64,000 nt of DNA from Oikopleura dioica (taxonomy: Eukaryota; Animalia; Chordata): contig OU015567.1 of NCBI GenBank assembly GCA_907165135.1, positions 9,548,001 through 9,612,000 of the forward strand. The letters are read 5' to 3'. The notes under the pieces were generated by a model that searched no databases, had not been told where the DNA came from, and worked only from the letters and a program-made list of their open reading frames with translations. This document shows positions 2,910 to 63,890 of this stretch, piece by piece (the stretch's first letter is position 1; every line of letters starts with the position of its first letter). The translations under genes and the position numbers were made by a program.

Positions 2910-5900
2910 TTACGAAACAACGATTCTTACTACGTTTTTCGTCTGAACCTTTTGTTGTGTCAGAGTCGAACTTATACTTTGGGATGTCACGACCTCGTGC
3001 CTTGGTGGAATGCCGACTTGGTAATCCTTCCTGTGGAGCATTTCGGCCCAGAAGGGGTGCTTCCGAAAAGGCTGAAGTTTGAAGTTTTGCATTTCCCAGA
3101 GCGAGATTCCAGCCGAATGAATGCAGCCGCCGCCTAGAAGGAACATTCTTCATTACGTCAAAAGAACAAGCCAGAGGGTCGTGGAGATTGTCTAATTCAA
3201 CTACTTGTACTTACCAACAAGGAGCATTTCCCCAGAAGGATCTTTGCCATCTTCCCAATCAATTCCATACTGCCCTTTCCGAATATAGATAGCAACGGGA
3301 TGCCCACGTGTTAAATTTACGATTGGCTTAAATTAGGGAAACGGAAACATCGTTGCGACTATCAGACTTGTTAAACCAGCAGATGCTCATCCTCTAACCC
3401 TTTCCTTGTCCATCCAGCAGAATATATGTTCGTCGATTTTTCTTATTGCAGCTTTATTTTGTTATTGAGAAGAACTAAACCATTAAATGGCAATTAAATT
3501 TCAATTTCATAATCTGTTTTGGCATAACAATTCCTGGTATAACGGGCGATCGATGATATAATCTGACAAAAACGGACAATACATCGTCCTCAGTTATCTT
3601 CAAAAGTCCATCGACTGGGAGAGATAAGTCCATTAGCGTGAAATTATTCGTGAACAGGGCTGGATGATTTGTCCCCGAACACGTTAACACGTCGCCGTTC
3701 GGAGATTTATCTGCACAAGTGGGATCAAAAGACGACGTAAAAATGATGATTCAAAAAAGATGATTTTTATGCAAGGCAGGGAAATTCATATTTTGCATAA
3801 TACTGCATTAGCTCAAATTGCTATGTTAACTAAGTACAAACATGCATATAAAACAAACAGCAGCTTGTTAGACTTCTCCAGGGCGAGAAAAATCGGCGCA
3901 AGTAGCAATTTAGAAAATTACAACATGGACGCAAAATCAGTTACCCACTAATGCCTCGAGTAAGCAAATGCAGGTGCTTCTCGTTCTCTTGAAACGGTTT
4001 TAGATGAGCTCCCCTTACGAAAAGCATTACTGGCTTTGATCGTGGATTAGCCGGATTCGGGAAGAGACGGAAATCTAAAGTTATTCTTCTTCAATCACTC
4101 GAAAGAAAAAACTGAGGGTCGGATCATTGAAATTGAGATACTCCTGGTCTTTTTATATGATTTTTTGGACGAAATGAGGGGAACCAGGAGTTCTCAATTA
4201 CTACTAACTATACTTTCTTAGTCAGCAATTTTGATATTTGTCCACATTTTTGTTCTAAATCAGCGCGTTTTTTCGATGTTCTTGCACGTTCAATGCAAGA
4301 TGGTTTTCTAGTGGCATGCTTCGATTGGCATTTTCAGCTATTCAGAGGAACAAGAAACATCTCAGGGTGGATTTTCACAAGCGCGCAGGCGGCGAATTCT
4401 TACGCGCTGAACAAAGTTGTAATATAAATACCAACTTGCTGAGCACGATCTTCTGCCGTTCATTTAAGCTAACTAGATTCATAAATTGGATGTTTCCACT
4501 GCGGAAATTCTTTAAGACAGACGTGAAAATGCTCCAACAAACTCTGCTCAAGAAGCAAGAATCAGCGAGTTTGACTAAAAGTGTCCAAGAAAGACTATCA
4601 GAATCTCTTAGCAGTCCTTGTTCAGGGTACTGATAAGGACCTTAGTGTTGATATGAGCATTTAATCGGCTTTCCGTGCGGCCGGTTGTTCGACAAGGACT
4701 GAGATACCGTGTCGAACGTGAAGGAAGAGAATCCTGTACTAGTGAAGGCGTGTTCCAAGTCTTGCAAATCGTATTTTGACCGAAGATAAATTATGACGCG
4801 GAAAAAGCTGATTAGTTTAACTCGAGAGCTAAAATGGTGAATGAGCGTCTTCCAACGAGAGAAGGAAGTAGATAAACTCATCGTATGAGCGATTATCCAG
4901 TAGCCGTTCTAGAGACATTTTAGAATCCTTCCTGCGCGATGATTTGATTAATAGAACTTTCATTTTTTGAACCATTTAAAATGAAAAAAAAAATACATCG
5001 GATTCAAAAAAGATAGTCTAGGTTAGAAGTGCGTGCATAAAAATGTCAAGAATTTTTCACTGAAATTGTGAATTCCGGAATTTGAATATCAAGAGCTCAC
5101 AAGGCTCGGCCATTCCATCTCTCTGATAATTTAAAACTTGGGAGAAATCAAGAGTACAGGGCACTTTTGCCCGCACGTTTTTACTGCAGATGATGATCCA
5201 CGTCCCTCGGAATCACATTAGACGAATCCAATAAAATTCACGAAATTAGCAGGCGGGTGATATTTGAAACCGAATCTGATTTTTACACCTTTCTAATCCC
5301 CTTGCTCAAATGATCAATGAGATTTGCCTTCCCTACCGTTCTAGCGGTTTTTATCTTTTTCTAGCGGTTCCCCCGGAAAAATTTTAAAAACAACTGTTTG
5401 TTCTGAAACATGCTCTACAAAGTTGACTCATTCAAAGGTGTCTTAAAGCAAGAAGTTACGAAAGATGAGTCCTAAGTCCGACCGATCCCCGAGTCTTGCT
5501 AAATCGCTCGGATCAAATCTATCTACCAAATAAAAGTCTAAGAGGCTTGGATCGTCGTATTAGTGGCTTGAAGATTGTATAACTTGCTGCTCGCACTGCG
5601 TCTGGCTTTTGATCCCCGACTACGACCGCAATTGGCCTCTTCCGATGGTTTCTCTCCTTCGTTTGAAACTTGGTCCGTTGGCCCACCGCAACGCCATAAA
5701 TCGGAAACGCGCGCTTCCCTGTGTGGAAGTTTAACAAGTCGCATCCCTGTGCTTTTATTTCAGTAGTAAAATATTATTTTAACTGAACGAGGGTTGACTA
5801 ATTCAATGTTCACTTTAGTTTGTGGCATGAACTTTATTGGAACTAAGATCATTATTTTAGCCATGTTCAGCTACTCGTAAGAAATTTAAGAAAGAAACGA

Positions 5901-24547: not shown

Positions 24548-26589
24548 TCAGGAGCTCTCTTTTCTACCGACTTCTTGATTTTCTTTCAATTTTGTGAGAG
24601 GCAACCCTGCCCAGTTGAGCTCAGGGCGGGTTTGAATGTGCAAGTGATACAGGCATTTCTTCGCAGCGTCATTTTCAGCATCATCTTGAGATCGTCCTCT
24701 GCCGATGACAGTGATAGGAGGCCGAGTAAAAGTCTTCAAAATGCACTGATACACAGAACGACTGTAAGGACGATTGATATTTGGCTGATTTTCTGAAAGA
24801 TCGAAGGACTGTTTTTGCTTTTCTTCGTCCTCACTTAAATAATTTTATTCGTATAACCGGAACTTCTAGGGTTCCGCACGATCGGAGGACCCAAATTTCA
24901 AAAACCAAAATTAACTATAAGAAATTTTGAAGTTTTAAGTGGGATTGAGGTTTTCGACTATGGCGAAGAAAATGACGATACTTATATTCTGATAACTCTT
25001 AAAATTCGCCGATTTATCTCGGTTTTTCCGGTATATTTCTGTCGCACACGTTCAGTCGCCCTCCCATTTAAAAGAACACCAAAAAATAATAGTTTTTGTT
25101 TTTAAATGAAATTATAACTCAGCGAACTTTTTGTGTGCTGATCAATTAAAGTTTTCAAAACTATTATCATTTTTATTTCCCGCGCGCTGATTGGTCGAAT
25201 TTCTGACTGTGTTGTTCAGATGGAAGAATCTTCAGTCTAGAAAAAGTCGCTTGCGCAGCTGACCAATCAGAGCGCATAAGCCTTTTAAACTTTATATTTT
25301 TAAATAGCTTTAAAATAACCAAAGAAATGGCATTGGGGGGAAACTAGGATCGGATATGGATTCTACTAGTCATTTTTAGTAGAATTTAAAAATTTTGGTA
25401 AATATAAAGTCTCTGTCCGAATCATGCGGAACCCTAGGAACTTCCTATCAGGAGGATGCATAATCAGATGATTTGCTCACCTTTCTGGCAGCTTGATTTC
25501 ATTTTTGCGCTTTAATTTGGGCCACAAAATGACGTACGAGAACTCGACATCCTTTCTGTTCTGGATTTCCTTCAGCTTATCTATCGGTTTCGGCACATAA
25601 TTCCTTAACAATCAAGTTATGAGAGTCCGTCAGACCGATCAATGACCCGCAAACATTGTGGCGCAAAGACAAAGTCCTATAGTTCCCGTGTGACGGCTGC
25701 GTCACAATGCTGATTCGGTAATGGGACAAGTTTAATCTTTCAACAATACCTTGATTCCGCTTCGTCTGTTTTCAAATCCTCGAATTCACCGTCTCTGATT
25801 TCTATGAAACGATTGCATCTGTTTCTGACGCCGTGGCAGAAGAGAATCTCGTCAAACTCCGGCTTTGAGTTCTTATTGTCAGTAACTTCAGCTTGTTTAT
25901 TCTTTGAATCACGATTTTTACGCTCTTGGTCGATTGCGTCTAAAATCAGCTGGGCGCAATTCTTAGCGGCTTGACGTTTTTCTGGAGAATAAGCCATCAA
26001 TACTTTTCCCTAAAGACGGCCCTTTTTAATCTTAAAAAATAACCCAAAATCATACCCTTAAACAGCCAAATTTAACTTTACTCGTATCTTTGAACTTGTA
26101 ATAGTACCGATGAATTTGACAACCCTCTCTCGACGTCATTTCCGAGCCGATTTCATAGTGTTCTTTCTCAACAAGCTTCTTATCTTTAAGGAATTTATCC
26201 ACTTCTCTTTTCGCATCCCCTCGATCCAAATCATATTTACTGCTTGGTAAGACTATGTCCATCAACGCGTCCTGTTCTCGCAGATGGATGAGAATTTTTT
26301 CGCCAAACTGATTTTTTAGCTTCTTCACATCTTTGCCTTTCCACTCTCCAAGAACATTTTCAGAACACTCTTCGAACATCTTCAGATCCTCGAACTCGGA
26401 TCTGCACTCTTTATGCAGTTTGAATTTCAGTTTAGTCTGGCCATCGTTTTCAATCTTTTCTTGGAGCTCGTAGTGCCAGCCGTGTTTTTGGTCCTTATCC
26501 GTTCTTCGAATCAGTGGCGGTTCATTCTTTCTACACCAATCTTCCCATAGTTTGAAGGGTTCTTTTAGCCAGAAATCATTGCTGTTCAT
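24548..26589 (-). CDS. dsRNA-binding protein with a TRBP/PACT/Loqs-like terminal dsRBM, multi-exon
   Basis: The last exon YQCILKTFTRPPITVIGRGRSQDDAENDAAKKCLYHLHI resembles dsRBM3 of PRKRA/TARBP2. The upstream ORFs (25740-26000, 26050-26589) are assigned to the same gene only tentatively. Confidence 0.6.
24867..25436. mobile_element. hAT-family MITE (570 bp), element A, in an intron of the dsRBM gene
   Basis: Imperfect TIRs TAGGGTTCCGCACGATCGGA and TCCGAATCATGCGGAACCCTA. Perfect 8-bp TSD GGAACTTC (24859-24866, 25437-25444). Subterminal homology to elements B and C. Confidence 0.93.
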
Positions 26590-35222: not shown

Positions 35223-38200
35223 TTAGTTCAGAATAGCAGTAATTGCAGCTTGAAGAGTAGTTGATGAATCGGAGGATTGAGTTTTAAGTGAGACATTCAC
35301 CAGACCAGCGTTGATCTAAAAATATGAGTAAAATAATACTAGGAAGGTCGATTAACCTTGATCAACATCACGAATTTCTCCTGATTAGACGATAGCTGCC
35401 CGCAGATAGACGCACCATTCTGCGCTGACTGCACCAGGTAGCAACCACTAAATCGATACAGACACTCTTCCAGACTTGCCAGCTCAGTTTGGTACTGCTG
35501 CTCGACGGTGACCTCGAAGAATTTTTCGTGAATCAGATCCACGAGCTCGTCATCGCTGACTTTCCACTCGGTGAGATTGAAGAAAGGAGTGAAGATGTGT
35601 TCGAACTTGAGTTTCTTTTCTTTCGACGATTTAGATTTGGAAGAGATGGTGTAGCAAAGCTTGCCTTTGTAAACAATCTCATCGGTGCGTCTGAATGGGA
35701 AAGCAACTTCGCCCTGGCGCGGAAGATCTCGCTTTTCATCGAGGAATTCGAGCTCAGAAATGTCTCTCGATTTGTGCTTGTTTTGGACAACGAGCTCTAG
35801 GCTGTCCCGATCATTAAATTTGATTGAGACGGAAATGTCGACATTGTCAGCGACTGGCAAAAGGCCTGTAATCAGCGTTGGCTCGGAGACATGCGGAACT
35901 GCTTTAGGATTTTCTGGAACTGCGCTGCTTTCTTCGTCTGATGAGATGATTTCTTCGCTCTTGAGCTTCTTTGTTTTCTTCTTCTTTTTCGTCTTTTTCT
36001 TCTTCTGATCTACCTTTGGTGCTACTTCAACCTTTTTCTTGCTTTGAAGAAGATCAGAAACATCGATGTTGAAGCGTTTAGCATCATCGTCTTGGTCTGA
36101 TTCCACGGGAGTGTCTTCTGCGCCTTCTGGCATTTCTTCGTCCATCATGATTTCCACCGCTGGAGTGTCTTCTTCAGGCTCTGAGACTTTCTCACTCGCT
36201 TTTTTCTTCGATTTCTTTGTTTTCTTTCCTTTCTTTGGCTTCTTGGTCTTTTTTGGCAAGTATTTATCGGATCCGCCGATGCCTCCAAACACAGTGTTGA
36301 CATCTGATTCTGGGGAAAGAATTGTTTGATAGTCGGTCTCTGCTTCTGGCTTTTCGGACTTCGGGGATGCATCGTCGAGTTTTAAATAGTTAATATCGTT
36401 CAAGCGCATTTTTCCAAGCGGCAGTTTTTTCCCTGACGGCGAAGTTTTTCCGGAACCTATAATTGACCATTTTTTGCAGAAATTATCGCGAGAACTGACC
36501 ATTATTTTCGGCATAGTAATCCTTGAATGCGTCATCAATGTCTTCCTCGGGTTCTACCTCCTCCTCAGGCTCCTCTTCCTCATCGTCACTTTGCTCGAAG
36601 ATAAGTCCCTCTAAATCGAGTCCGTTTGGCAAGGGGACCTTTTTCTGCGCCTTTGGTCCAACTGGCTTTAGTTCCCCTAAGTTTTTGTAAAGTTTAACTT
36701 TCGTAGAAAATCTTTACCGTCGTGAAGTCCGTAGATTGTTTTTAAAAGAACATTATCCGATGCCAATTTCAATGTTTGAACAGCAAGGCTGGCACGTTCT
36801 TGAATCTCGATATTTGGGAAGGCCAGAAATTTGTCGAAAAGAGCGATGTGCTCCGAAATGTCGACATTTTCATCTGCTTCTGAAGATTAAGTTTCGATAA
36901 ATGTTCTGTGTCGTTCGTTATGTACCTTTGAGACCATGGGACAAGATCTTGAGGGCGTTTTGGAACATGACCGAGGTGATATCAACGGATAAATGACCAA
37001 ATTCCGCATTCATAATTGCCAAGAATAGATTTTTCGGATCGGTGACAAATTCCACGAACTCGCCGCAAATAACAGCAGCCGATCGAATGACATCAATGCA
37101 TCCGTTCCTGCCGAAGATAGTCGAAATGGCGCCGAGGTTTTGAAGAATGTGGGACATTTGGGCGACGGAGTATTCGCGAAGAGTTCGCACACTGAATTGT
37201 TATTAACGCTTTGGGCGATTGTGGCGTTTTTAAACGCCACGTGAACTTTGGCGGACCAAATTTCCATGAATTTCCCAAAGGATTGATAAATTTTTACTTT
37301 TCTGAAAAATTCGGACATTTTTCTTCATAAAAGCCGCTTCAAAATTAAATTTTCACAACAACAACTTCTTCCAAAATCAAAAAGAAAAAGTTCGACTCGC
37401 CCAAAATAGGCTTACTCATGCGCTTTTCCCTTCAGAGAGGGAAAGGAGAGAGAGAGAGCGCGATGCGCTGAGTGGTCTCCGTTTGCCCAAGTCGCCGTTT
37501 GCCCAACTTGGGCAGACGGAGATCTTAGGCAAACGGCGATGTGAATTTTTTTTAATTGATTGATCATAAAATGATAGAAGTAAGGCGACAATTTCATTAT
37601 CATCACTTAGTCTGCTGGTTGCGCTCTGATTTGCAGAAACTTTCAGGTGAAAACAAAGGTTGTCCTGTGATGTCTTTTGAACGGTTATTAACCGTGGATC
37701 CTTGACAAGACCACCACAATTTTCTTATATTGTTTTTCAATAGTTGTATCCGATTTTCGAATAAGTTCTTGAGCATAAACACATGAATAAGAGACGAAAT
37801 GAAAAAACAGTATGTGAAAAAACGGCGACTTGGGCAAACGGAGACCACTCCGATGCGCTCCCTGTTTTTAGGTCTTACTTTGCTGATCATTTATGGATAT
37901 TTAAGACTTATGAACAGGGGTGGATATTTTGAAATCAACCATTATGCCATTTTATTCTAGAGCAAATTTAGAACAATTTTAACGGAAGAGAATAGTTGCT
38001 GCACATAATAATATAAATAAAAATTTTATTCACTTCAGATATAGCTATATGACGAAAGACTATTTCCTTTACTTTAAACATTCCAATAAAAATATTTAAG
38101 ACTGAAAATGTCAAGAATCTCCGCTGTTTCATCGCTCTACGTAACCAGCTATGGACAACGGGGTCAATGTTCGAACTGTTTTAGGTAAGATACTCAGAAA

Positions 38201-41200
38201 ATTGGAATTTCCCTTGACTAATTGATCTAATTTAGAGCCTTTGAGTTCACAGCAATCGTGAAGGAGCGTCGTCTCTGTAAAAGCTGTGCAGAAAATTTTC
38301 ATGGTCGCCAGAACAATTGGCATGAAATCAAGCAGCGAACCGATGCTACCTTCAAGTGTGCTGCCACTCCACAAAGACCATCAGAAGTTGAAGGCTGTGG
38401 TGCAGAGAATCTCACGTACCGCGAGTATATGACAGGAAGCTGCTGCGATAATGCGGCGCGACGACTTCAAGCTGATTTCGAAAATCTGATGTCCGAAGAC
38501 GATCGATACCAGATTTTCAAAATCCTCGAAAAATACTACGACGATGACAAGGAAGATCTCGACGACTCGATTCATAACCTGAATGCCGCGAAAGAAGAGT
38601 CTCGAAAGGCTAAAGAAGAGAAAGACAAAGTTTGCCGAAAAATCAACAACAAGGAAAAAATAAAGGAGCGAATACTGGCCAGACTTGATGGAATTGAAAA
38701 GGAACTTGAAAATGACAAGAAAGATCTTGAAAGCAAGGAAAATCTCTTCAACGCGGCCAAAATGAATGAAGAGTTCAATGATAACCTCACGAAGGAGAAG
38801 CGGAATTCACTCAAACGGCTCGCGAAACCTCTCAATTTCCTTTCTGCAAAAGTCTTCAAGTTCGACCAAGGTAAACTCGATTATCAAAAAATATTTTCAA
38901 TATAAAGGAAGATTAGATGACAATGACACTAAAGGAGAAGCGTCCAAAGCCGCTGATGTCAAAACAGAATATTTCGAAGCTTAGAATCGCTCTATTTTAA
39001 ATTCTAACTTTTACTAGGGTTCCGCACGATTGGACCAAAATTTTTATTTTTAATAAAATTTGGAGATTCTACCAAAAATATGCCTGGGAATTCATTCCTG
39101 GCCTCTGTTTTTCCCGAAAATCCTCCCTTCAGCCCTTTTCAGGGCTTCAAAGTATATTTTGCCAAAGAGGCCTGCTGCACGCTGATTGGCTGGCGCTCTT
39201 CGCGGGAATATAAATCGAGTAATGCAACGAGCTGTCGCCCTGGAGTTGGCTGAGTGGTGAGCGCTTCTCTTCGCAAAGAGGAGATGGCGAGCTCGAAGCC
39301 AGCTCGAACGCACCCCCTTTTCCATGTTTGGCTTTCTAGCTTCAACATGGAAAACGCGGATGGGCCTCGAAAAAGAAAAATTCTTTTTTTGAGTTTCGAG
39401 CTCGTGCCCGTCCGCCAATCCTTTTTGAAGGACTGCGCTCACCACTCGGCCAACAACTATTTGCGGGATGGTTCAGTTTAGCGGATTTTGACTCGAAATT
39501 TCCGGAGTCAAATTTCCGGACATTCGGTGGAAAAATTAAAGAGCTATCATAGATCTTAATTTTGTCAGGAGGGAGTTTTCTTCCTCTTAGGTTTTTTTAA
39601 CAAAATTTTACCTAAAAGTTTTGATCTCGGTCGGAGTTCGCCCTAAAACTGGCTGTATTCCAAGGAATGTTTCCTGTAAACATGCATATTTTATATTTAT
39701 TAAAAGATCCCCCGATTTTCCGAAGTTTCAAAATCTCATTCAAAAGCTCGTCTTTAAATGAGCATATTTTGGTAAAATCAGCTTTCTATCTCAACATTTG
39801 CTTATGTATTAGAGGCCGTCAAATTGTATCTACTTTTATGTGGCCTTTTTAAATGCGAATCTTTTTAAATTGCGAGAAAGTTCAGACCCTAAACTCAATA
39901 TTCTGGAAGAATCAGCATGATCGGGTAAGTGAATAAAAAATTCTAGTTGTAAAACTTTTTGAAACCATTATTGGCGTTTTTTCGGTTTTTAAATGCTCTC
40001 TAGCCCCATTCATTGGCCGAAAATTCTAACGCGGTAATTATATTCGTTGATAAAAATTGAAGCCAAAAATTTTCTCGACAAGATTTCTAGCGCTCGTAAC
40101 TCGAAAACAACAAGTGATAGCAGCTTCTGTTAAATAACAAATGAAATTATGCGTTGAATTCGAACTAATGTCTTTGCGACAAAGTGATTTTCAAAATTTA
40201 TTTTTATAATTCAAAATTTACTGTGGGACAATGACAGATTTTTTAAATTTTCGCGGTATGAGCGCCAGTTCGCGCTGATCTTCCTGTAGGCTTCTTCTTT
40301 TTCTCTCTTCGCGCTGAGTTTTCTGGCTTTTAAAAGCTGCCAACAGCTTTGATTTTGCTTCATGTGGCTTCAGGTCATCAAGCCATTCGTTCAGCTTGTT
40401 GAATTTGGCTCGCCCGTTTTCGTACATCTTTTCGCGGCACAGATTTTGGATTGACTTCTCGAATCCCTTGAGTGTGGCAAAGGACGATTCTTAATTTAAA
40501 TTCAGATATGCTTTATTCAAAAAAGACTTACCGACTGCTCTGTTCGAACAACTTATTTTTCGATCGTCTGGCAAATCGAGATCCTTGAGAAGCCCGAAAT
40601 CCTTCACGTACTTCTTCAAACTTCCACCGACAACAGCAACAGCAACAGTGTTCAGTCGCTTGATTCTTGTTGCGGAAACCTTTTGGAATCTTTCCTCAAT
40701 CAATTCCACGGTTTTTTTAGACTCCTCGGATGAAGACATCAGAGCCGCCTTCTCCAAAAGACACGAATACGGCTCGTTTGAATCAACAATTGTCTTCATT
40801 CGCTGAATTACTGATTGGAACAAATCCTTCAACCCAAGGAAAGACAAGGCTTCGTTGTTCACTTTTGAGATCTTCTTGTGGAAATGATTAATGTTCGCGC
40901 AATAGTTCAGGAACAATGTTGCAGCGTCGAGCAAAACCCCATTATCTCGGCCGGAGCAAAGTTTGTGGATCTGGTGAAATTTGCTGTCCTCAAAGCTTCT
41001 TGCCATCATGTGTTTTGTCGCGTTCATAACCGTCGGGAAATGTCTCACAAGAGCGCCCGAGTTGCGACAGTCATTTCCAAAGCGCTTTCCTATTAATATA
41101 AATTAAGAAAAGTCATTTGAAGGAAAATTACCTAGATCGTGAGAGAAAATCTTTGTTCTGGTGCTTTCCATATCGTATTTGAGCAGCAGCTGTAGCGACC

Positions 41201-44200
41201 GGCGACCATCTTGTTGGACGTACCCAAATTTTTCTGGTTTTCCGAAGACACTCTTCACAAGTTCCAGTAAGGTGAACGCTTCTTCATTGACCTCTTTTAA
41301 CGCACAACGGCTGTTCTTGTCACAATTTGCGACGCAGTGCATCGCACAAAAGAGTGATGGAGGTGCGTCCTTGTTGATTTCCCGCGTCAGTTTTTCTGCA
41401 ACAACCGCGTTTGCGTTGATTTGAGCTGACTGCTGATCTGACATAAGGAGATCAATCTTCTCGCCGATTATTCGTCCCAAACCGGTTTTGTTGACGATCC
41501 CAATCATTTGGTCGGCGATTATCTGACTTGTACCTCCGATCGCAAGCTCGGTCCCGATGAGATGAAGCTTGCCAGACTCGTTTATGAGCCCGACTGAAAT
41601 CGTTTTTGATGCATCCAACATGGCTGCTCCGTCACTCGCGAGGTGGAATCGTTTGCCCTTGAGAATGACGTCTTTGGTGTGCTCTTCGTTCAAATACTTT
41701 AATGAATCTCGAAGTCGCTCAAACCAGTCAGGAGATGGAACTCTTTTTTCTTCGCCAAGAAGCTCGGGATAATACTTCGCTGTCGTTTTGAAGAAGTTGT
41801 GGATGCTGCTTGCGGTTTCTCCTTTTATCAGCATCTCCAGCGATAAGTTGATAAATTTGGGGCTCCAGGTTTTGTTATCTCCACCTTTACCGTAATTTGG
41901 GAGCCATGCGCTACGTAGAAAAATATCGTTTATTCCTCCAACTGCAATTCGTTTTTTCTCATCATTTTCGTTCTCAATTTCTTCTGCTCCTACGACTTCT
42001 ACCATTTCTATGGCTTTTCCAGCTTCTTCATCCTCATCTGATCCCGGCAGCCATTCTTCCTCTTGCTCACTTGAATCTTCAAGAAAAGCTTCATTCATCA
42101 AGCTTTCATTCGCCTCATTCTCTTCGTTGATTTCAGTCGCCTGCAAAACTTGCGACAGCCCAGTTGAACGCTTACCAAGTTCTTTTGCATCGAAATGAAT
42201 GGAATCTTCCTTGCAAAAAAACTCATTGTCGTCACGAAACCAGCGTTCAAGATCTCGCCGAACCTGATTCTTCTTCTTCGCAAGTTTCATCCCCTTTATG
42301 CAGTTGTCAAAGACACACTCAGGTTTCGCCGTGATAATATCTACGAAATTTTAAGCAAAGATCGGCGTATAAAACTTATACCTTCAAGATAAGGAATAAT
42401 CACTCGAGTAAATCCCGAAGAATTTCCGGAATTCTTTTCTGCAATCTTACGCCATTCTTCTGGATTCTCTAGAAGCGCGGAGATATTCTCTTGAGTAAGG
42501 CCCAAAAATCGAAATTTTTGCTCGTTGGCTGGACGATGAGTGGCGCACGGATGAATTTGACGAAACTACTCTTCGAAAAAGAAAACATATTCTTCCGACA
42601 AAAATACGAATAAAGATATCCGAATGATTCGAATTTACGAATGAGATTTCAATTTCCAAAGAGTAAGAGAAAAAAAGAGATCTAGAAAAGCGGAAGTCTT
42701 GAAATCTAGAAAAGATTTGATTCTCGAAAGAATGGAGAGTCTAGAAATTATTGAATACTTATTGTTTCGGAAACTTTCGTCTGAGAAACTTATGGCAGAA
42801 TCTTTTGGTAGACTGATTCTAGAGGTAGATTGCTTATGCATGTCACGGCCCTTAAATTCAAAAATCATGGAAAAGGGCTGAGACGGCCCGAAGTGGAAAA
42901 ACTGTGGAAAAAATTGCGATTATCACGCTCAGTACAATTTATATGCTTTTAACGACTTTTGAGGGCCAGAATTTCGGGTTAAAATGTTCGTAAAGGGGGA
43001 GTGTGATTCAACAAAATGATCCTCAGAATACCGGGAATCTAAACATGCCATAAAGAGACCTGTGATTAAGAGTTGAAAAAACAGGGGAAAATCCCTTAAT
43101 TTCAAAAACCAAGGAGCGAGGGAAGGAGGGGAATCGGCCATTCGGGCCGTCAAGCTCAATTAAAATTCAAGGCGAGGCAAAGGAATTATAACGACGGGCG
43201 GTTGAAAAAATTTTGTACGGGCATGGGCGCCCGCCGAAGACGAAAAACTTTTTCGTTGATTTCAAATTATCCAGCCCTGCGAAAAAGGCAAAGGAATTGA
43301 AAGCTGCGCAAGTTTCAAAAGTTCAAAATCGAAAACTCCCAAAGTGTATGGAACCGAAACGGCGAAAAACGCACTGGGATTATCTTCTGGACGACGTGAA
43401 GTGGATAGCCACGGAATTAACTGGCAAAAGCAAAATGACGCGGCTTTTAGAAGTTATTCGCAAGTGGGGGAATTCTTTAGGCGCGCTTTCTGAGTATCGC
43501 AATATTCTAATGACCATGAAAAACGAGGAAAAGAAGCTCAATCTTCGGCCTCTAACGCCAGACACAGCGGATGATAGATGTTTCGATCAGACGAATCACA
43601 AATCAAAAATCGAGCTATTGGAAGAAGACGCTAAAACTCTCCTGCACATGATTTGCGATTTGGACAAGCTTTACCCGGACGTAAAAGTCAAAAGATCGGA
43701 ACTTCCCAAAATTGCAGAAAAAGACCTTCGCGAAAAAGCAGCGAATCCAAGAACTTCAAATAATCAAAAACATCGAGCACAACTTTCGCTTTGACATTGA
43801 ACTAGCCCAGTACCAGCAACCGCTGATTTTTTTCATTGAAATCGAGTCCTGAGAATGTCTTCCATATCAGCCAATCAGAGCGCACCTCCTCAATTTTCAC
43901 AAAGTGATAAATAGCGGATAATTTTAAATGGACAGCACACAAAAACCTTGATTTTTTTTGCTCTTTTTTCAATAGATTTGTGATTTTTAGAATTGTTTTT
44001 ATCTACTGTGTTAAAGAAAAGTTTGTGCTGCCACTAGAAGTATGAAAAACCGAGAGAAATCGGCGACTCTGATGATGAATCGGAATTTAACTATCATCAT
44101 TTTTTTCGCCGTATTCGAAAACCTAAACTTTATAAAGAGTCTATTCTTAATACAATATGGATCTGGATTTTGAAAAATAAGGTCCTCCAATCGTGCGGAA

Positions 44201-45811
44201 CCCTAACTTTTACTGCCATAGATACCAAATATAAAAAATTGGAAAGCGCTTACCGGACTGTAATTTCCAGCAATTGCGTGGCAATCTTCGGTCCATAAGA
44301 CACCTTTGATTCAATCTTCGTCAGGTCCAGAAGCACATTCAAATACCACTCGAAATTCTTGATAAAAACGAATCCCTGCTGGCTGCACATGTCGATCATC
44401 TTCGAAACTAGCTCATCTCGGTAGATTGTATTTTCAGTCTTTCGTACGTGGTCGAGTAGTTTCGCTGTAATGTCCATTATCGTTGATTTCGTGACCATTT
44501 TACTAAATAAGCTTGGTACAGAAATAGTCAGAAAAGTCAAAAACCTGATGAGGTCTAAAGCTCGAAGCCGAATGCTTTCATCTTTGTCGTCAAGACACGC
44601 AAGAATTATGTCCTTGTGTTGGCTTACAATCTTCGGGTGCGATTCTGAAGGATAATATTCAATAAGGCTCTTTATTTTCTGCTTTTACCAAGAATCCGAG
44701 TCATTGAAAGAAGCCCAAGATACTTCAAATTCTGATCATTATCTTCAATAAGAATTCTAAGCTTATCCACGCAGAGTTGTATCAACGCTTCATTGTCATT
44801 TCCAGCAGGAGCGTATGTCTTCGCCTGGAAAAATAAATAACACTTATTTGACAGCGCGACTGTACCTGAATCAATGTATTGATGCATTCGTATAGCAAGC
44901 TCATTGCGCTGGTATTATTAATTAGCGTCTTCAAATTCTCTTCAATCTTCTTGCCCAGTCTTGGTTCGTGGGGAATCAAGCATCCGAATAATTTGATAAT
45001 TTTAATGAGCACCCAATTATTCGAACTCTTGGTCATCAATCGCATTAAAATCGGGCTCAAGAGCAGGTAGTTCTTTGGATTCTTCCTTGCAAGCTCGCAA
45101 ATGACATTTACAGCGGCAGATTGCACTCCTGGGTCCTTGTCTTCTAGCTTTTCTTTGAGACGAGGCATGGCAGCGCGCATCGCTTCTGGGTAGTGGTAGA
45201 ACAGTTTGTAAGTTATTAATGTAGCGCGTTTTCGAACATGAGGTCGGGTAGATGACATCAGCGAAATGACATCATCGGTCAAGTCTCGGGCAAGATCAGG
45301 CGTCATGAAACAGGATAGACCGCCGAGAGCAGCGCTAGCTTCGAATTCGGAACCTTTGAGGATGTCCTTCTTGATCAAATTCGTTGAGAGCATGAGAACA
45401 TCGGTCTCAGCGTTGAATGATTGAGAGGCAGCCCAGTAGCCCAAGCGCTTTTCGGTCAACTTTTTCGTGGTTTTCATTCGTCAAAAACACGTCCTAACTA
45501 TCATCTAAGTAAATTCAGTAATGAACCAGTTCCTTAGTCGAGGACATAACTTCAATAATATTAAAACTCGCCCAGCCCATCTCATATCCTAGCATGTGAA
45601 GGAAGCAGAGCTTCGAAATCGCCACCGATTTCACATCTAATTTCGGGTTCTTCAGCTCCTCCCTAATTTCCTCGACTGCTTCCAAAATGTACTCGCGTTC
45701 GTGACCTTTTGCGTTTCGAACTCCTCGGACGAGGTCTTGGAGGGTCTTGTCGAAAATGCGGTCGATGCCGGTTTTCACCTTCGACCCAACTTTTTTCATT
45801 GCCACATCCAT
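35223..45811 (-). CDS. AP3D1: AP-3 complex subunit delta
   Basis: IDRIFDKTLQDLVRGVRN, EKRLGYWAASQSF, LKEKLEDKDPGVQSAAVNVICELARKNPKNYL, DNDQNLKYLGLLSM, NFEWYLNVLLDL and AAVICGEF. A 7.06-kb intron (37192-44253) splits LEITVR|VRTLREY in frame. Confidence 0.96.
37470..37850. mobile_element. Mutator (MULE)-type MITE, 381 bp
   Basis: 31-bp perfect TIR GAGTGGTCTCCGTTTGCCCAAGTCGCCGTTT, 9-bp TSD CGATGCGCT (37461-37469, 37851-37859) and internal repeats of CGTTTGCCCAA. Confidence 0.88.
38108..38984 (+). CDS. Cys-rich (degenerate RING/TRAF-type Zn finger) coiled-coil protein nested antisense in the AP3D1 intron
   Basis: CSNC...CKSC...C...C...CC followed by a long E/K coiled coil. GT-AG introns near 38185 and 38870. 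Confidence 0.65.
40218..42841 (-). CDS. Spliced DDE transposase (hAT-like)
   Basis: FHLASDG (D1), LLMSDQ (D2), CAMH (CxxH), and SNRAVESSFA after splicing (catalytic E). Long stop-free exons at 41103-42290, 40491-41048 and 40218-40490. The start codon is uncertain. Confidence 0.8.
43213..43794 (+). CDS. Transposon-borne accessory ORF with an HSA-like motif of EP400/SRCAP/Domino type
   Basis: LPKCMEPKRRKTHWDYLLDDVKWIATE (43336-43416) resembles LPKLQE..RPK.HWDYLLEEM.W.A.D. The track start is TTG and the first in-frame ATG is 43348, so an upstream exon may exist. Confidence 0.7.
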   Translation: MYGHGRPPKTKNFFVDFKLSSPAKKAKELKAAQVSKVQNRKLPKCMEPKRRKTHWDYLLDDVKWIATELTGKSKMTRLLEVIRKWGNSLGALSEYRNILMTMKNEEKKLNLRPLTPDTADDRCFDQTNHKSKIELLEEDAKTLLHMICDLDKLYPDVKVKRSELPKIAEKDLREKAANPRTSNNQKHRAQLSL

Positions 45812-58029: not shown

Positions 58030-61000
58030 TTACATCATTTGTCGGGCGAGAGCGAATCCTCGGCTTTGATCAGTGCCTGGTCCAACTGGCTCTCGGATTT
58101 GAGATACCTGTCGTTTCAAGACCTTAAAATGTTATTTCCTATTTTTGATAAGCTTTTGTACCTTTTCAGTAGCAAAACCAGGGCTAAGCTTTCCTGAGTT
58201 GTCATCTGAGATCTCTGAGAGATTGTCTCCATGTCCAGAATCTTGGCTAAACGAAGAGATAGGATTTCATTGTTAAATATCTAATTTACCAGGAGCCAGA
58301 AATGATAGATTTATCTAGGGTTCCGCACGATTGGAGGACCTTATTTTTCAAAATCCGAATCCTTATTATATCAAAAATAGACTTTGTATAAACTATGGGT
58401 TTTCGAATACGGCGAAAAAAATGATGACAATAATATTCCGATTCACCATCGGAGTCGCCGATTTCTCTCGGTTTTTCATACTTCTAGTGGCAGCACAAAC
58501 TTTTCTTTAACACTGTAGATAGAATCAACCCTAAAAATCACAAATCTGCAAAAACAAATTTAAAAAAATTCAAGGTTTTAATGTGCTGTCCATTTGAAAA
58601 TTATCCATTATTTATCATTATGTGAAAATTGAGGAGGCGCGCTCTGATTGGCTGATGAGGAAGACATTCTCAAGGGTCGATTTGAAGGAAGATTATTCTA
58701 AGCTTCCGCGATTTTGTCCTTGTTGGTGAATAAGCCCTTTCTCGATAAAATTTTAAATAGAAACCATAACAAAGTAAAAATCTTGGATAATTTGACTTTT
58801 AACAACAATGGGTGAGGGCGGGGTTGGGGACATAACTGAGATTGATCACCTCAGAGTCCAACGCCGATCTCAAGCCCCTTAAATTAAAAAATCAAGGAAC
58901 GGGGCTGAAACGGCCCGAAGGGCCGTCAAGCCCCTTAAATTAAAAATCAAGGAACGGGGCTGAAACGGCCCGAAGGGCCGTCAAGCCCCTTAAATTAAAA
59001 ATCAAGGAACGGGGCTGAAACGGCCCGAAGGGCCGTCAAGCCCTTAAATTAAAAATCAAGGAACGGGGCTGAAACGGCCCGAAGGGCCGTCAAGCCCCTT
59101 AAATTAAAAATCAAGGAACGGGGCTGAAACGGCCCGAAGGGCCGTCAAGCCCCTTAAATTAAAAATCAAGGAACGGGGCTGAAACGGCCCGAAGGGCCGT
59201 CAAGCCCCTTAAATTAAAAAATCAAGGAACGGGGCTGAAACGGCCCGAAGGGCCGTCAAGCCCCTTAAATTAAAAATCAAGGAACGGGGCTGAAACGGCC
59301 CGAAGGGCCGTCAAGCCCCTTAAATTAAAAATCAAGGAACGGGGCTGAAACGGCCCGAAGGGCCGTCAAGCCCTTAAATTAAAAATCAAGGAACGGGGCT
59401 GAAACGGCCCGAAGGGCCGTCAAGCCCCTTAAATTAAAATCAAGGAACGGGGCTGAAACGGCCCGAAGGGCCGTCAAGCCCTTAAATTAAAAATCAAGGA
59501 ACGGGGCTGAAACGGCCCGAAGGGCCGTCAAGCCCCTTAAATTAAAAATCAAGGAACGGGGCTGAAACGGCCCGAAGGGCCGTCAAGCCCCTTAAATTAA
59601 AAATCAAGGAACGGGGCTGAAACGGCCCGAAGGGCCGTCAAGCCCCTTAAATTAAAAATCAAGGAACGGGGCTGAAACGGCCCGAAGGGCCGTCAAGCCC
59701 TTAAATTAAAAATCAAGGAACGGGGCTGAAACGGCCCGAAGGGCCGTCAAGCCCTTAAATTAAAAATCAAGGAACGGGGCTGAAACGGCCCGAAGGGCCG
59801 TCAAGCCCCTTAAATTAAAAATCAAGGAACGGGGCTGAAACGGCCCGAAGGGCCGTCAAGCCCCTTAAATTAAAAATCAAGGAACGGGGCTGAAACGGCC
59901 CGAAGGGCCGTCAAGCCCCTTAAATTAAAAATCAAGGAACGGGGCTGAAACGGCCCGAAGGGCCGTCAAGCCCTTAAATTAAAAATCAAGGAACGGGGCT
60001 GAAACGGCCCGAAGGGCCGTCAAGCCCCTTAAATTAAAAAATCAAGGAACGGGGCTGAAACGGCCCGAAGGGCCGTCAAGCCCCTTAAATTAAAAATCAA
60101 GGAACGGGGCTGAAACGGCCCGAAGGGCCGTCAAGCCCCTTAAATTAAAAATCAAGGAACGGGGCTGAAACGGCCCGAAGGGCCGTCAAGCCCCTTAAAT
60201 TAAAAAATCAAGGAACGGGGCTGAAACGGCCCGAAGGGCCGTCAAGCCCCTTAAATTAAAATCAAGGAACGGGGCTGAAACGGCCCGAAGGGCCGTCAAG
60301 CCCCTTAAATTAAAAAATCAAGGAACGGGGCTGAAACGGCCCGAAGGGCCGTCAAGCCCCTTAAATTAAAAATCAAGGAACGGGGCTGAAACGGCCCGAA
60401 GGGCCGTCAAGCCCCTTAAATTAAAAATCAAGGAACGGGGCTGAAACGGCCCGAAGGGCCGTCAAGCCCCTTAAATTAAAAAATCAAGGAACGGGGCTGA
60501 AACGGCCCGAAGGGCCGTCAAGCCCCTTAAATTAAAAAATCAAGGAACGGGGCTGAAACGGCCCGAAGGGCCGTCAAGCCCCTTAAATTAAAAAATCAAG
60601 GAACGGGGCTGAAACGGCCCGAAGGGCCGTCAAGCCCCTTAAATTAAAAAATCAAGGAACGGGGCTGAAACGGCCCGAAGGGCCGTCAAGCCCCTTAAAT
60701 TAAAAAATCAAGGAACGGGGCTGAAACGGCCCGAAGGGCCGTCAAGCCCTTAAATTAAAAATCAAGGAACGGGGCTGAAACGGCCCGAAGGGCCGTCAAG
60801 CCCTTAAATTAAAAATCAAGGAACGGGGCTGAAACGGCCCGAAGGGCCGTCAAGCCCTTAAATTAAAAATCAAGGAACGGGGCTGAAACGGCCCGAAGGG
60901 CCGTCAAGCCCCTTAAATTAAAAATCAAGGAACGGGGCTGAAACGGCCCGAAGGGCCGTCAAGCCCCTTAAATTAAAAAATCAAGGAACGGGGCTGAAAC

Positions 61001-63890
61001 GGCCCGAAGGGCCGTCAAGCCCCTTAAATTAAAAATCAAGGAACGGGGCTGAAACGGCCCGAAGGGCCGTCAAGCCCCTTAAATTAAAAATCAAGGAACG
61101 GGGCTGAAACGGCCCGAAGGGCCGTCAAGCCCCTTAAATTAAAATCAAGGAACGGGGCTGAAACGGCCCGAAGGGCCGTCAAGCCCCTTAAATTAAAAAA
61201 TCAAGGAACGGGGCTGAAACGGCCCGAAGGGCCGTCAAGCCCTTAAATTAAAAAATCAAGGAACGGGGCTGAAACGGCCCGAAGGGCCGTCAAGCCCTTA
61301 AATTAAAAAATCAAGGAACGGGGCTGAAACGGCCCGAAGGGCCGTCAAGCCCTTAAATTAAAAATCAAGGAACGGGGCTGAAACGGCCCGAAGGGCCGTC
61401 AAGCCCCTTAAATTAAAAATCAAGGAACGGGGCTGAAACGGCCCGAAGGGCCGTCAAGCCCCTTAAATTAAAAAATCAAGGAACGGGGCTGAAACGGCCC
61501 GAAGGGCCGTCAAGCCCCTTAAATTAAAATCAAGGAACGGGGCTGAAACGGCCCGAAGGGCCGTCAAGCCCCTTAAATTAAAAATCAAGGAACGGGGCTG
61601 AAACGGCCCGAAGGGCCGTCAAGCCCTTAAATTAAAAATCAAGGAACGGGGCTGAAACGGCCCGAAGGGCCGTCAAGCCCCTTAAATTAAAAATCAAGGA
61701 ACGGGGCTGAAACGGCCCGAAGGGCCGTCAAGCCCCTTAAATTAAAAATCAAGGAACGGGGCTGAAACGGCCCGAAGGGCCGTCAAGCCCCTTAAATTAA
61801 AAATCAAGGAACGGGGCTGAAACGGCCCGAAGGGCCGTCAAGCCCCTTAAATTAAAAATCAAGGAACGGGGCTGAAACGGCCCGAAGGGCCGTCAAGCCC
61901 CTTAAATTAAAAAATCAATGAACGGGGCTGAAATGGCCATCCGTGTTTTCCAAGCTAGAAAGCTTTTGAAAAAAATGAGACACGGGTTGGATTCGAGCTC
62001 GCCATCTCGTCTGCGCGAAGAGAAGCGCTCACCACTCAGCCAACTCCAGGGTGACAGCGCAGTGCAGTACTCGATTCATATTCCCGCGAAGAGCGCCAGC
62101 CAATCAGCGCGCAGCAGGCCTCCTTGGCAAAATATACTTTGAAGCCCTTAAAAGGGCTGAAGGGGGATTTTCTGGAAAAACAGAGGCCAGGAATGAATTT
62201 CTAGGCATTATTTTGGTGGAATCTCCAAATTTTATTAAAATGAAAAATTTTGGTCCAATCGTGCGGAACCCTAGATTTATCGTCAGAAATAGAAGAACCA
62301 TCGTCAGATCCAAGCTTGCCCTGAGCAGCAAGTCGATCTTGTCTGTAAAGAGTTCTTCGCATTCGCGGTCCCAAAAGGGCCAATCTCATTCCAGTTTCAC
62401 TGAATAAAAACTTTAACCAGCCGTTGTTATCTTTTCCGGACTCACCAGAAATTCTCTTTGAGCTCTCTGACAGCCTTGAGGGCTGCTTCAGAGCTTTCAA
62501 AATCAACGACGGCGCAGAGGCTGTCTCCAATGTCCGGCACTTGGGTGGCGTAGTTGCGCAAGTCAGAAGGAACCTCCTTGCCTGGCCGGAGGAGTCGGAC
62601 GAGGCCGATGTCTCCGTACTCGCGGAACATGGTGGTGATCTGGTCAACGCTGTCGAACTCTGGAGGCACTCGGATCGCAACAACAGAAGTGAGCAGTCTT
62701 GGCTTTCGGAGGGTTTCCGGAAGGATGTCTCGTCGTTTGACACGGTACCCTTGAAGTAAAGACGTTATATCACGTTTATGGTCACTTTTGTTTTTCCGAA
62801 ATTTTGAGGTCTTTTTAGATTTCTATATTTTTATTATTCCAAAAATGAAAAATTTGGAAAAAAATATAAACACCAATTTTAACAGGCTTTTATGGTTATT
62901 TCTTAATCAATCATTACCTTCAGGTGAAACCTCCAGCTGCGGAGCTAATTTGAGAGCATGTCGAACAACTCGCCAGTCTCTTGTGAGCTTTTTGACCTTT
63001 TTGAAGCTTGTCATAAGCTTTTTTCTTGGTTCACAACTGAGCTTCTGTACTTAATTGATGTTGAATAAGAATAAATTTGCTAAAAAACTTCGAGAAATAA
63101 AAGTTAGGAACCATTCCTTGATGGAGATATAGCCCTCGGATTTGCATCGGATTTGTCGGAGGAGATATTTGTCTTTGGCAAGGTACTCGTCGGAAAGATA
63201 ATACTCCACCTGATCGATGATAGCTTCTGATTCTTCCTGAGTTGGCGCGTCGTAGTCGCCCTCGTCCGAGTACTGGATCACACCGGAATCATTCGACGAG
63301 CCACCTAGTTTTCAAAACAGTTACAATCTGGGGATTAGAAGATAGGAGCATCAGCGACTGATGCTGAACCTGATTCTCCAGAGTTGCGACGCTGTCGTGG
63401 AGATTTTGAGTTGTCGTTGATGCGCATGCGCTCTGCTTGTTGAGCGATTTCCTCAATCTCAGCAAGTTGAATGCTGCCGCGTTGCTTGATTGGGACGTAT
63501 TTGTTCTGAACAAGAAAGGTTATTTCATTTCCTTCGAACCATGTTCAATAGTGCTAGGCCTCATGATGAGCATTTTATCAAATCATTAAAATTCAGTTTT
63601 TTTCCTTACTCTCATTATTGGCGCGCTCTTATGGTGTTTACCTTTGAGGGAGATTTTCTTCCTCGTGAGTTTGATTTCTTGCCGCTGGAGTTGATAGAGT
63701 CACGTGAGTCGATGGAACTGTTGTGTGATTCAGTGCGAACGAGACCTTCGCCGTTGTGGCCCAGGAAAGCATCGGGATGGCCTCCTGCTGGGATAAAGAC
63801 GGGAATTTGTTCGGCTGGCCAGGGCATGAAGGGGTGATGGGGGCTCGGATGGGCCGAGTATGCTGGCACGAAGCCTCCCACAGGAGCATA
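58030..63890 (-). CDS. LARP6: La-related protein 6 (Acheron), 5' end beyond the resolved region, interrupted by element C
   Basis: La motif QVEYYLSDEYLAKDKYLL...GYISIK...LMTSFKKVKKLTRDWR, RRM YGDIGLVRLLRPGKEVP...CAVVDFE, and C-terminal LSA-like IREPVGPGTDQSRGF ending at the stop at 58030. Confidence 0.92.
58316..62273. mobile_element. Non-autonomous hAT derivative (3958 bp), element C, inverted relative to B
   Basis: Same 20-bp TIR and 8-bp TSD GATTTATC (58308-58315, 62274-62281). About 370 bp at each end is homologous to the opposite ends of B. Confidence 0.96.
58871..61934. repeat. Tandem satellite, about 55 copies of a 54-56-bp unit
   Basis: Unit CAAGCCCCTTAAATTAAAAATCAAGGAACGGGGCTGAAACGGCCCGAAGGGCCGT. 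Copies differ almost only in C- and A-run length. Confidence 0.98.

Follow-up and report, generated by a model that had tools for sequence, protein, structure and literature searches.

Introduction

Cut-and-paste transposons are well known to capture gene fragments in plants and fungi, whereas few such captures have been documented in animals. The genome of Oikopleura dioica is among the smallest animal genomes. For the hAT elements, transduplication of histone H3 has been described in a complete fungal hAT (PMC6710886), and Pack-hAT elements are known in maize (PMC8903248). In this study, we analysed a hAT-like DNA transposon of O. dioica, element B, in a window of 64,000 nucleotides, by which we mean the whole stretch of DNA under study. 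A preliminary description had reported that this element carries, besides its transposase gene, an open reading frame (ORF) with an HSA-like motif of the EP400/SRCAP/Domino chromatin remodellers, and had proposed that its product might serve the element as a chromatin-targeting factor or decoy.

Results

Element B spans positions 39015 to 44205 (5,191 bp) and matches chr2 of the Okinawa assembly OKI2018_I69 at 100%. It sits within one intron of the AP-3 delta adaptin gene, which is expressed from the minus strand. The left terminal inverted repeat (TIR), TAGGGTTCCGCACGATTGGA, occupies 39015-39034 on the plus strand and is complementary at 20 of 20 positions to the right TIR on the minus strand (44186-44205), a pair whose number expected by chance is 0. 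Immediately outside lies an 8-bp TSD, ACTTTTAC, read directly at 39007-39014 and found again at 44206-44213 with 8 of 8 letters the same. The consensus start of hAT TIRs is YARNG, which the left TIR of element B fits. The 8-bp TSD, identical on both flanks, and the short TIRs starting with TAGGG are both features of the hAT superfamily.

The putative transposase gene lies on the minus strand at 40218-42560 and consists of exon-like blocks at 42290-41103, 41048-40491 and 40427-40218, together with an N-terminal exon near 42390-42560. Internal stops are absent from the coding blocks, and a homologue from Bergen aligns over residues 52-603 by tblastn; from its sequence, the gene looks intact and the element looks autonomous-type. 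The homologues of this transposase are restricted to Oikopleura and marine metagenomes. No Pfam family was matched in seven of them, and a profile search of PDB sequences with the transposase gave no match. The hAT dimerisation domain PF05699 was not found in the C-terminal exon blocks at E<=1 or in the homologues at E<=0.1, where an HMM miss is weak evidence for a family as divergent as this one. The AlphaFold model was poor (mean pLDDT 46), with a beta-beta-beta-alpha-beta-alpha-beta core at 298-397, and its best Foldseek match was the Hermes hAT transposase 2bw3 (E 1.9e-4, with a TM-score of only ~0.2). The protein-language-model neighbours of the transposase carry the FAM200/ZBED5 RNase-like and Dimer_Tnp_hAT families, which is a lead only. 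At the protein level, hAT identity thus finds at best weak support in Pfam, the PDB profile search and AlphaFold.

Between the transposase gene and the right end there is a family-specific internal region (42848-43160) with single units of a 55-bp satellite, the same satellite that fills element C; the word depth in the Okinawa DNA run X25 climbs to 59,488 at 42740-42926. The right subterminal region (43832-44205) is common to element C, with 87-88% identity, and fixes the right edge of the insert.

The ORF is located at 43213-43794 on the plus strand and contains LPKCMEPKRRKTHWDYLLDDVKWIATE. As had been described, it is stop-free over 193 codons, lies within the TIRs and TSD and is divergent from the transposase, whose blocks (42290-40218) run along the minus strand. 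It starts at TTG, in a stop-free run that opens at 43192. The first in-frame ATG is codon 46, which immediately precedes the conserved EPKRRKTHWDYLL motif; a Leu-to-Met change in the fragment made this ATG just ahead of the HSA remnant.

Against the Pfam HSA profile (PF07529), which has 71 positions, the ORF scored 22.7 bits with an E-value of 1.3e-4 and matched positions 2-27 only. The Pfam cutoff (gathering threshold) is 23 bits, and the host proteins scored 45-52 bits over positions 3-54. A phmmer search of the PDB with the ORF matched human EP400 (E 5e-6) and SRCAP (E 1.6e-3). The donor-gene protein is the O. dioica HSA-domain protein UniProt E4Y7E4, and the match of the ORF to it (phmmer E 9.9e-57) means that the resemblance is not due to chance. 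Judged by these comparisons, the HSA resemblance of the ORF is real but partial. The motif claimed earlier stands as far as descent from a bona fide HSA-domain gene is concerned, and falls short when membership is judged by score over the helix of ~70 residues. A word-indexed search of 5.8 billion proteins with the ORF, in which only proteins of similar length were candidates, found none; an exhaustive search of representative proteins then recovered the host gene.

The captured fragment of ~600 bp (43222-43817, plus strand) corresponds to residues ~100-318 of this host HSA+SNF2 (p400/Domino-like) gene, which is intronless. The earlier proposal that the element captured a piece of a host p400/SRCAP/Domino-family gene is borne out by the protein match above and by homology at the DNA level, which consists of two blocks and a frameshifted continuation with tblastn matches in two frames. 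The identity by blastn is 81-88% to the L006 host gene and 75-80% to the Bergen host gene (L005), both from other lineages. The preliminary description also supposed a fusion to novel sequence, which can be discarded, as codons 4-174 and the 83 nt past the frameshift all come from the same host gene. Conservation of the post-HSA block extends from the host protein to more distant relatives. The Bergen host gene has no counterpart of an insert of 39 nt (43243-43281, plus strand), the 25-nt core of which is found again at 37915-37939; in the L006 host gene, a palindromic MITE-like insert of ~185 nt occupies the place of this insert. A search with the host protein found no Okinawa orthologue. In the Okinawa DNA run X25, a second contig has the intact parental gene of the same genome, with the HSA core and the 11 nt discussed below.

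On both sides the fragment is flanked by family sequence, that is, by satellite seeds up to 43160 and by the subterminal region from 43832, both common to element C. Host-gene DNA is therefore enclosed between the element's own terminal sequences, as is the case in transduplication. The candidate explanation that the fragment is part of the adaptin gene was rejected, as the TIRs enclose the fragment and its strand is opposite to that of the gene.

The captured copy is truncated at both ends and carries several lesions. The HSA remnant, MEPKRRKTHWDYLLDDVKWIAT, comprises codons 46-68 (43348-43415, plus strand), and directly after 43415 a deletion of 100 nt removes the HSA core, into which the X25 host contig and RNA reads run on. 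The following 34 nt (43416-43449, plus strand) are host-derived and read out of the host frame as ELTGKSKMTRLL, and a 2-nt deletion after 43449 brings the frame back. After 43735, the loss of 11 nt brings a further frameshift and thereby creates the stop at 43792-43794; the ORF tail and stop are out of frame, and host homology continues as RIQELQIIKNIEHNFRFDIELAQYQ in the +2 frame (43735-43817, plus strand). Four host versions (L005, L006, L007, L008/L009) all retain the 100 nt of the HSA core as well as the 11 nt, and the Okinawa host contig of X25 differs from the fragment at the joint 43415>43450 and by 11 extra nt at 43734-43735. About 25 HSA residues, or ~6-7 helical turns, are left in the fragment, whereas the HSA helix of EP400 has about 22 turns and carries ACTL6A-ACTB and another ACTL6A (PMC11330486).

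The assembly annotation has no gene model at the ORF, and no listed RNA run contains the fragment stretch. Three oligo-dT RNA runs of 2026 belong to another O. dioica lineage, with all reads <95% alike and most <90%, the adaptin flanking exon included. All of their reads over 43285-43817 stem from the host gene, and at the fragment breakpoints (43285, 43415 and 43817) they depart from the fragment and continue in host sequence. Since they come from another lineage, these runs are uninformative on transcription of the element B copy and map breakpoints only.

The fragment-specific codon changes were 17 synonymous and 11 non-synonymous, compared with 15 and 2 in the nearest host lineage, and the non-synonymous branch length was 0.057 for the fragment against 0.015 for that lineage. 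The fragment branch shows an excess of amino-acid change. The pairwise dN/dS of the fragment against other lineages was low (0.06-0.09), with synonymous sites saturated, and mostly reflects pre-capture constraint on the host gene. A three-taxon dS decomposition was rejected as unreliable because of this saturation (dS 0.8-2.7), and the substitution inference was restricted to non-synonymous and parsimony counts.

None of the four other copies examined has the fragment; they are two sister full-length copies (YSR) and the non-autonomous elements A and C of the window, which are bounded by the same TIR as element B. In element numbering, the YSR copies have 1-510, 1163-3675 and 5005-5191 of element B and are without 3676-5004. 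The candidate of a different host cargo in the YSR copies was rejected, as neither a coding signal nor a match to the window turned up in their variable region by blastn and six-frame ORF inspection. A metagenome DNA scan with a conserved 26-mer found intact host genes of other lineages only, and no further fragment-bearing element; the fragment-bearing copy was met once among the sequences examined. The depth of the fragment-specific DNA words (113-148) is roughly haploid, compared with ~303 for both Y copies combined, depth being a poor measure of copy number.

Discussion

Our results make it very probable that the ORF is a neutral, transduplicated host-gene fragment in a young, autonomous-looking hAT-like element, most likely inert passenger DNA. 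Neutral, Pack-type gene capture had been the fallback of the preliminary description, and it is the reading favoured by the lesions and by the absence of the fragment from other copies. It is proposed that ~600 bp of genomic DNA from the host p400/Domino/SRCAP-family gene (HSA and SNF2 ATPase) were copied into one lineage of the element family with the satellite-seed region on one side of the insert and the right subterminal region on the other. The mechanism would most likely be template switching during double-strand-gap repair after excision, and a similar process would have given rise to the relatives A and C with their internal deletions. The captured copy has lost 100 nt of the HSA-helix core, plus 2 nt and 11 nt. 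Only its youth and the shortness of its out-of-frame stretches would let it still read as a frame of 193 codons. Three points speak against this explanation, which are the unusual length of the ORF, the restoration of the frame by the loss of 2 nt after the loss of 100 nt, and the ATG made by the Leu-to-Met change. Chance could account for each of them, but taken together they leave slight room for selection.

The fragment may instead act as RNA, in which case ~600 nt antisense to the p400-like mRNA within the adaptin pre-mRNA could enter small-RNA pathways or lower the activity of the parental gene, an effect that has been proposed for some Pack-MULEs. The position of a plus-strand fragment in an intron of the expressed minus-strand AP-3 delta gene suits this role, as do the words of at least 31 nt shared with the Okinawa host gene, a sharing that follows from the collapse of the contigs between 43306 and 43347. 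However, intronic antisense RNA is short-lived, and at the roughly haploid depth of the element in the sequenced animal the insertion may not be fixed. We regard an RNA role as very unlikely.

The ORF could also be a working accessory gene, whose short pre-HSA/partial-HSA protein (e.g., from Met46) would target the element to chromatin or would interfere with the host TIP60/SWR1-type complex as a decoy or dominant negative. The 193 open codons with a second, frame-restoring deletion, the ATG directly ahead of the conserved motif and the good conservation of the post-HSA block with the host protein are in its favour. However, the actin- and ACTL6A-carrying helix is largely gone, reading in the host frame is truncated by the 11-nt frameshift, the excess of non-synonymous change falls on the fragment branch, and the single occurrence was at about haploid depth, which measures copy number poorly. 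The accessory or decoy role through binding of actin and Arp4, as put forward earlier, is not supported by an HSA core that is deleted, a frame that is broken twice more, the four copies without the fragment, and an ORF with neither a gene model nor a listed RNA run. The functional reading fails on three counts set in advance, as the HSA match is sub-threshold, the ORF is missing in other full-length copies and a transcript was not seen. We consider a working gene here very improbable.

It is hardly credible that long reads were mis-joined and the juxtaposition of host gene and transposon is an assembly artefact: the assembly is Nanopore-based with haplotypes merged (PMC8008620) and only one copy is known, but X25 short-read contigs cross both insert junctions with zero differences (42849-43335 and 43780-44037), the intact host gene has its own contig in X25, a second sample of the same study contains 0.67 of the words, and the fragment, having its own indels and substitutions, is not a pasted piece of the intact gene.

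As a long shot, either a Met46 product of ~148 aa (pre-HSA, the first HSA-helix turns and the post-HSA block) docks on a partner in a TIP60/SWR1-type complex, or the p400-like gene is disturbed by antisense RNA in the adaptin pre-mRNA. If this were true, the transposon would gain influence over chromatin control through H2A.Z and acetylation, in a genome where the pressure against transposons is extreme. On the preferred reading, neutral capture, the fragment reveals no new transposon accessory function, and it marks an abortive gap repair in a hAT-like family of Oikopleura that is apparently still active. Annotation of the ORF as a gene or as an HSA protein should be avoided. The value of element B is that it is a cleanly delimited young capture in a chordate, mapped as to its donor gene, its two junctions and the lesions that followed capture.

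Compared with the HSA domain (PF07529) of EP400/SRCAP/Domino/Swr1, the first ~25 residues (…PKxxEPxRxKtHWDYLLdEv.W.At) are matched in the ORF by descent from the host HSA gene, whereas ~45 further profile positions are deleted, among them the DFxxERkWK core and the helix segment carrying actin/ACTL6A. The plant Pack-TYPE elements (Pack-MULE, Pack-CACTA, Pack-hAT; PMC8903248, PMC5861414) are like element B in that a host-gene fragment lies inside a TIR transposon. Their fragments are mostly non-functional and truncated, with open frames sometimes kept, and the situation in element B is similar. However, Pack elements are non-autonomous by definition, while element B, with its seemingly intact transposase gene, is an autonomous-type element with cargo and is not a Pack element in the strict sense of a non-autonomous carrier.

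The Dothideomycete hAT with histone H3 (Pseudocercospora fijiensis, Pyrenophora tritici-repentis; PMC6710886, PMC3538342) is, like element B, a transposase-bearing hAT with a host chromatin gene as passenger, and the captured H3 copies of P. fijiensis are inactivated, as the fragment of element B most likely is. The fungal cargo is a whole histone gene present in tens or hundreds of copies and decayed by RIP, whereas that of element B is a fragment of a remodeller gene in a chordate host, seen in a single copy and damaged by deletions and frameshifts. Turmoil-1 of C. elegans (PMC2572040) is a rare animal case in which, as in element B, protein-coding sequence was transduplicated into a DNA transposon. 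The captures of Turmoil-1 sit in its terminal inverted repeats, whereas the fragment of element B is internal, between the promoter side of the transposase gene and the right subterminal region.

Structure of the carrier element

Element B (39015-44205; 5,191 bp) ends in perfect 20-nt TIRs (TAGGGTTCCGCACGATTGGA), and the same 8-bp TSD (ACTTTTAC) flanks it on both sides. The 193-codon stop-free ORF (43213-43794, plus strand) lies inside these boundaries and is divergent from the transposase, because the transposase-like coding blocks (42290-40218) are on the minus strand. Direct reading of the sequence confirmed the preliminary description on these points, including the HSA-like peptide that it quoted from the ORF. 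The ORF starts with TTG, and its earliest in-frame ATG is codon 46. The locus on chr2 of OKI2018_I69 is 100% identical to the window across the entire element, and the transposase-like ORF adjoining the 193-codon ORF showed 99% identity to an OKI2018_I69 chr2 protein, which places the window in the Okinawa assembly of O. dioica.

The 8-bp TSD and the YARNG-type TIR are consistent with a hAT element. Searches of Pfam and of PDB sequences with the transposase protein gave no match. Its structural model, which is of low confidence (pLDDT 46), has an RNase-H-like core, and the top structural match was Hermes (E 1.9e-4) with a TM-score of only ~0.2; the language-model neighbours of the transposase carry hAT-related families. 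Element B is here termed hAT-like, and hAT membership is not established at the protein level. Inverted copies of a CCAATCAGAGCGC(A/C) motif lie close to each end in the element family (39175-39200 and 43862-43885 in the window). The motif is retained in the diverged Y copies (YSR copy, Y2 position ~4330) and may serve the transposase as a subterminal binding site or a promoter as its CCAAT box.

The insertion splits the AP-3 delta adaptin gene (minus strand; 36918-37190 and 44250-45811), sitting 48 nt into an intron whose GT donor is at 44253. In the public annotation this gene stops at 44250, and RNA reads of another lineage are spliced onward from 44254. This onward splicing and an adaptin-like ORF at 36918-37190 (minus strand) imply a ~7-kb intron, which is very long for the O. 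dioica genome. At 44505-44547 of the same gene, the other-lineage RNA reads omit 43 nt and gain a single additional letter. The gap is one of the tiny introns typical of Oikopleura, and its boundary differs slightly between lineages.

Origin and state of the captured fragment

The HSA-like motif of the ORF stood as a resemblance, but not as a complete domain. In a phmmer search of PDB sequences, the ORF matched human EP400 (E 5e-6) and SRCAP (E 1.6e-3), the convincing stretch being residues 38-70, while the Pfam HSA profile gave 22.7 bits, below the gathering score of 23, over positions 2-27 of 71 only. Taken alone, the match is partial and borderline. The host HSA domains score 45-52 bits across profile positions 3-54.

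An exhaustive phmmer search against 1.84 billion representatives gave a single very strong match, P0008 (892 aa, E 9.9e-57), which is the O. dioica "HSA domain-containing protein" E4Y7E4, and weaker matches, P0009 and P0010, that span the C-terminal two thirds of the ORF. The E4Y7E4 gene is intronless, and its protein has the HSA domain followed by a SNF2-type ATPase region. The tblastn and blastn alignments place window 43222-43817 in collinear order with host residues ~100-318, the nucleotide identity being 81-88% with a metagenomic lineage of O. dioica (L006) and 75-80% with the Bergen gene (L005). The phmmer match and the collinear DNA support the capture of a host HSA-gene fragment by the element. 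The proposed fusion to novel sequence is not supported; because the P0008-P0010 matches extend into the supposedly novel part, that part is also host-derived.

The O. dioica p400/Domino/SRCAP-family protein (P0008 / L005:3001-5679; P0076, P0077) is itself unusual, being only ~790-910 aa and intronless, with weak or partial SNF2 and Helicase_C matches and with LADEKGLAKRTQ as motif I where GLGKT is usual. The protein may represent a remodeller that has degenerated or been strongly reduced.

Lesions in the captured copy were scored against the host versions L005, L006, L007, L008 and L009 and are the same relative to all of them. They are a 39-nt insert (43243-43281), a 100-nt deletion after 43415 that loses DFYQERKWK… and the remaining HSA core, a 2-nt deletion after 43449 that restores the frame, a 3-nt insertion (43579-43581), and an 11-nt deletion after 43735 that shifts the frame. 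Since the frame is restored only after 43449, ORF codons 70-81 (ELTGKSKMTRLL) are host DNA read out of frame. The final 19 codons and the stop are also out of the host frame, and by tblastn the host homology RIQELQIIKNIEHNFRFDIELAQYQ runs on in the +2 frame up to 43817.

The 39-nt insert lies at the exact site of a ~185-nt palindromic MITE-like insert in the L006 host gene, and it includes a 25-nt CAGGG… repeat terminus that occurs a second time at 37915-37939. The presence of this remnant points to copying from genomic DNA, not from mRNA. The capture route was likely template switching in gap repair following excision, a process that would also account for A and C, relatives with internal deletions. 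The L006 insert (L006:125-310), which has ~36-nt TIRs and lies inside the coding region of the host HSA gene, may be a transposon-derived intron.

Family copies and donor lineage

Two derivatives in the window have the same TIR as element B, namely A, a 570-bp MITE (24867-25436), and C, a 3.96-kb copy (58316-62273) filled with a 55-bp satellite. The word depth of X25, a DNA run from the assembly's own study, leaps to ~59,000 at 42740-42926, a single satellite-like unit within element B, so the satellite of element C is abundant genome-wide. Full-length copies of a sister subfamily were found in two Y-specific region (YSR) sequences (L002:8675-13333 and L003:8381-12876), with 84% identity to element B and 98% to one another; L003 also has additional partial copies. 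The transposase genes of the family annotated in the assembly number only three.

The YSR copies and element B have element positions 1-510, 1163-3675 and 5005-5191 in common, and element C has both the left end and 43832-44205 of element B. At the fragment-bearing positions 3676-5004, each YSR copy has its own ~1 kb of unrelated sequence instead; the ORF is therefore missing from them, and no coding signal was found in the ~1-kb variable segment of either copy. Family sequence thus brackets the insert: on the left lie satellite seeds, up to 43160, and on the right the subterminal region runs from 43832.

X25 contigs identical to the window span both insert junctions (42849-43335 and 43780-44037). 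The run also has another type of contig, in which the 11 nt are present (inserted at 43734-43735) and the sequence at 43415-43450 is different; it is the intact Okinawa host gene. Of the seven positions within 43297-43348 at which the other lineage departs from the fragment, two are also different in this host contig, and the host contig and the fragment have words of at least 31 nt in common. This identifies the Okinawa-lineage gene as the donor and points to a fairly recent capture. The word depth of fragment-specific contigs was 113-148, compared with ~124 and ~145 for single adaptin-exon alleles and ~303 for the Y-linked sister pair combined, which suggests one haploid copy, word depth being a poor measure of copy number.

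The three 2026 RNA runs come from another O. dioica lineage, with no reads at least 95% alike and most below 90%, the adaptin flanking exon included. All of their reads over the fragment have that lineage's letters and pass from the fragment into host sequence at precisely 43285, 43415 and 43817, continuing as …LGRPPKAK upstream, DFYQERKWKIE at the deletion and LQGIKWMITS downstream. Thus, the host gene is expressed and the reads mark the fragment breakpoints; these runs are uninformative on transcription of the fragment itself.

Possible function and comparison with known elements

Between-lineage synonymous sites are saturated (dS 0.8-2.7), so the pairwise omega of 0.03-0.09 is mainly a sign of the constraint acting on the host gene. 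Of the codon changes confined to the fragment, 17 are synonymous and 11 non-synonymous; L006, the nearest host lineage, has 15 and 2 of its own, and the non-synonymous branch lengths are 0.057 for the fragment and 0.015 for L006. The fragment changes strike conserved residues, such as WWNSLG to WGNSLG. This excess of amino-acid change and the three frame-affecting deletions indicate a pattern of relaxed constraint.

The assembly annotation leaves the interval from the adaptin gene to the transposase free of genes, a search of 5.8 billion protein clusters gave no protein of similar length, and the stretch is in none of the RNA runs listed; none of these is proof of absence. In human TIP60, the EP400 HSA helix has ~22 turns and bears ACTL6A-ACTB and one further ACTL6A (PMC11330486). 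The ~25 HSA residues left in the fragment are unlikely to bear these proteins. The suggestion of an accessory or decoy function is not supported, as the HSA core is deleted, the frame is broken and the constraint is relaxed; the fragment shows no sign of function.

Gene capture by such elements has been documented before. A catalogue of Pack-hAT elements exists for maize (PMC8903248), and, according to a 2008 paper, no protein-coding transduplication had been known in animals prior to Turmoil-1 (PMC2572040). In fungi, a complete hAT took up histone H3 and then amplified it (PMC6710886). Element B carries a piece of an unusual donor gene in a chordate. It is a clean chordate case of an already known process, transduplication, that is distinguished by its donor.
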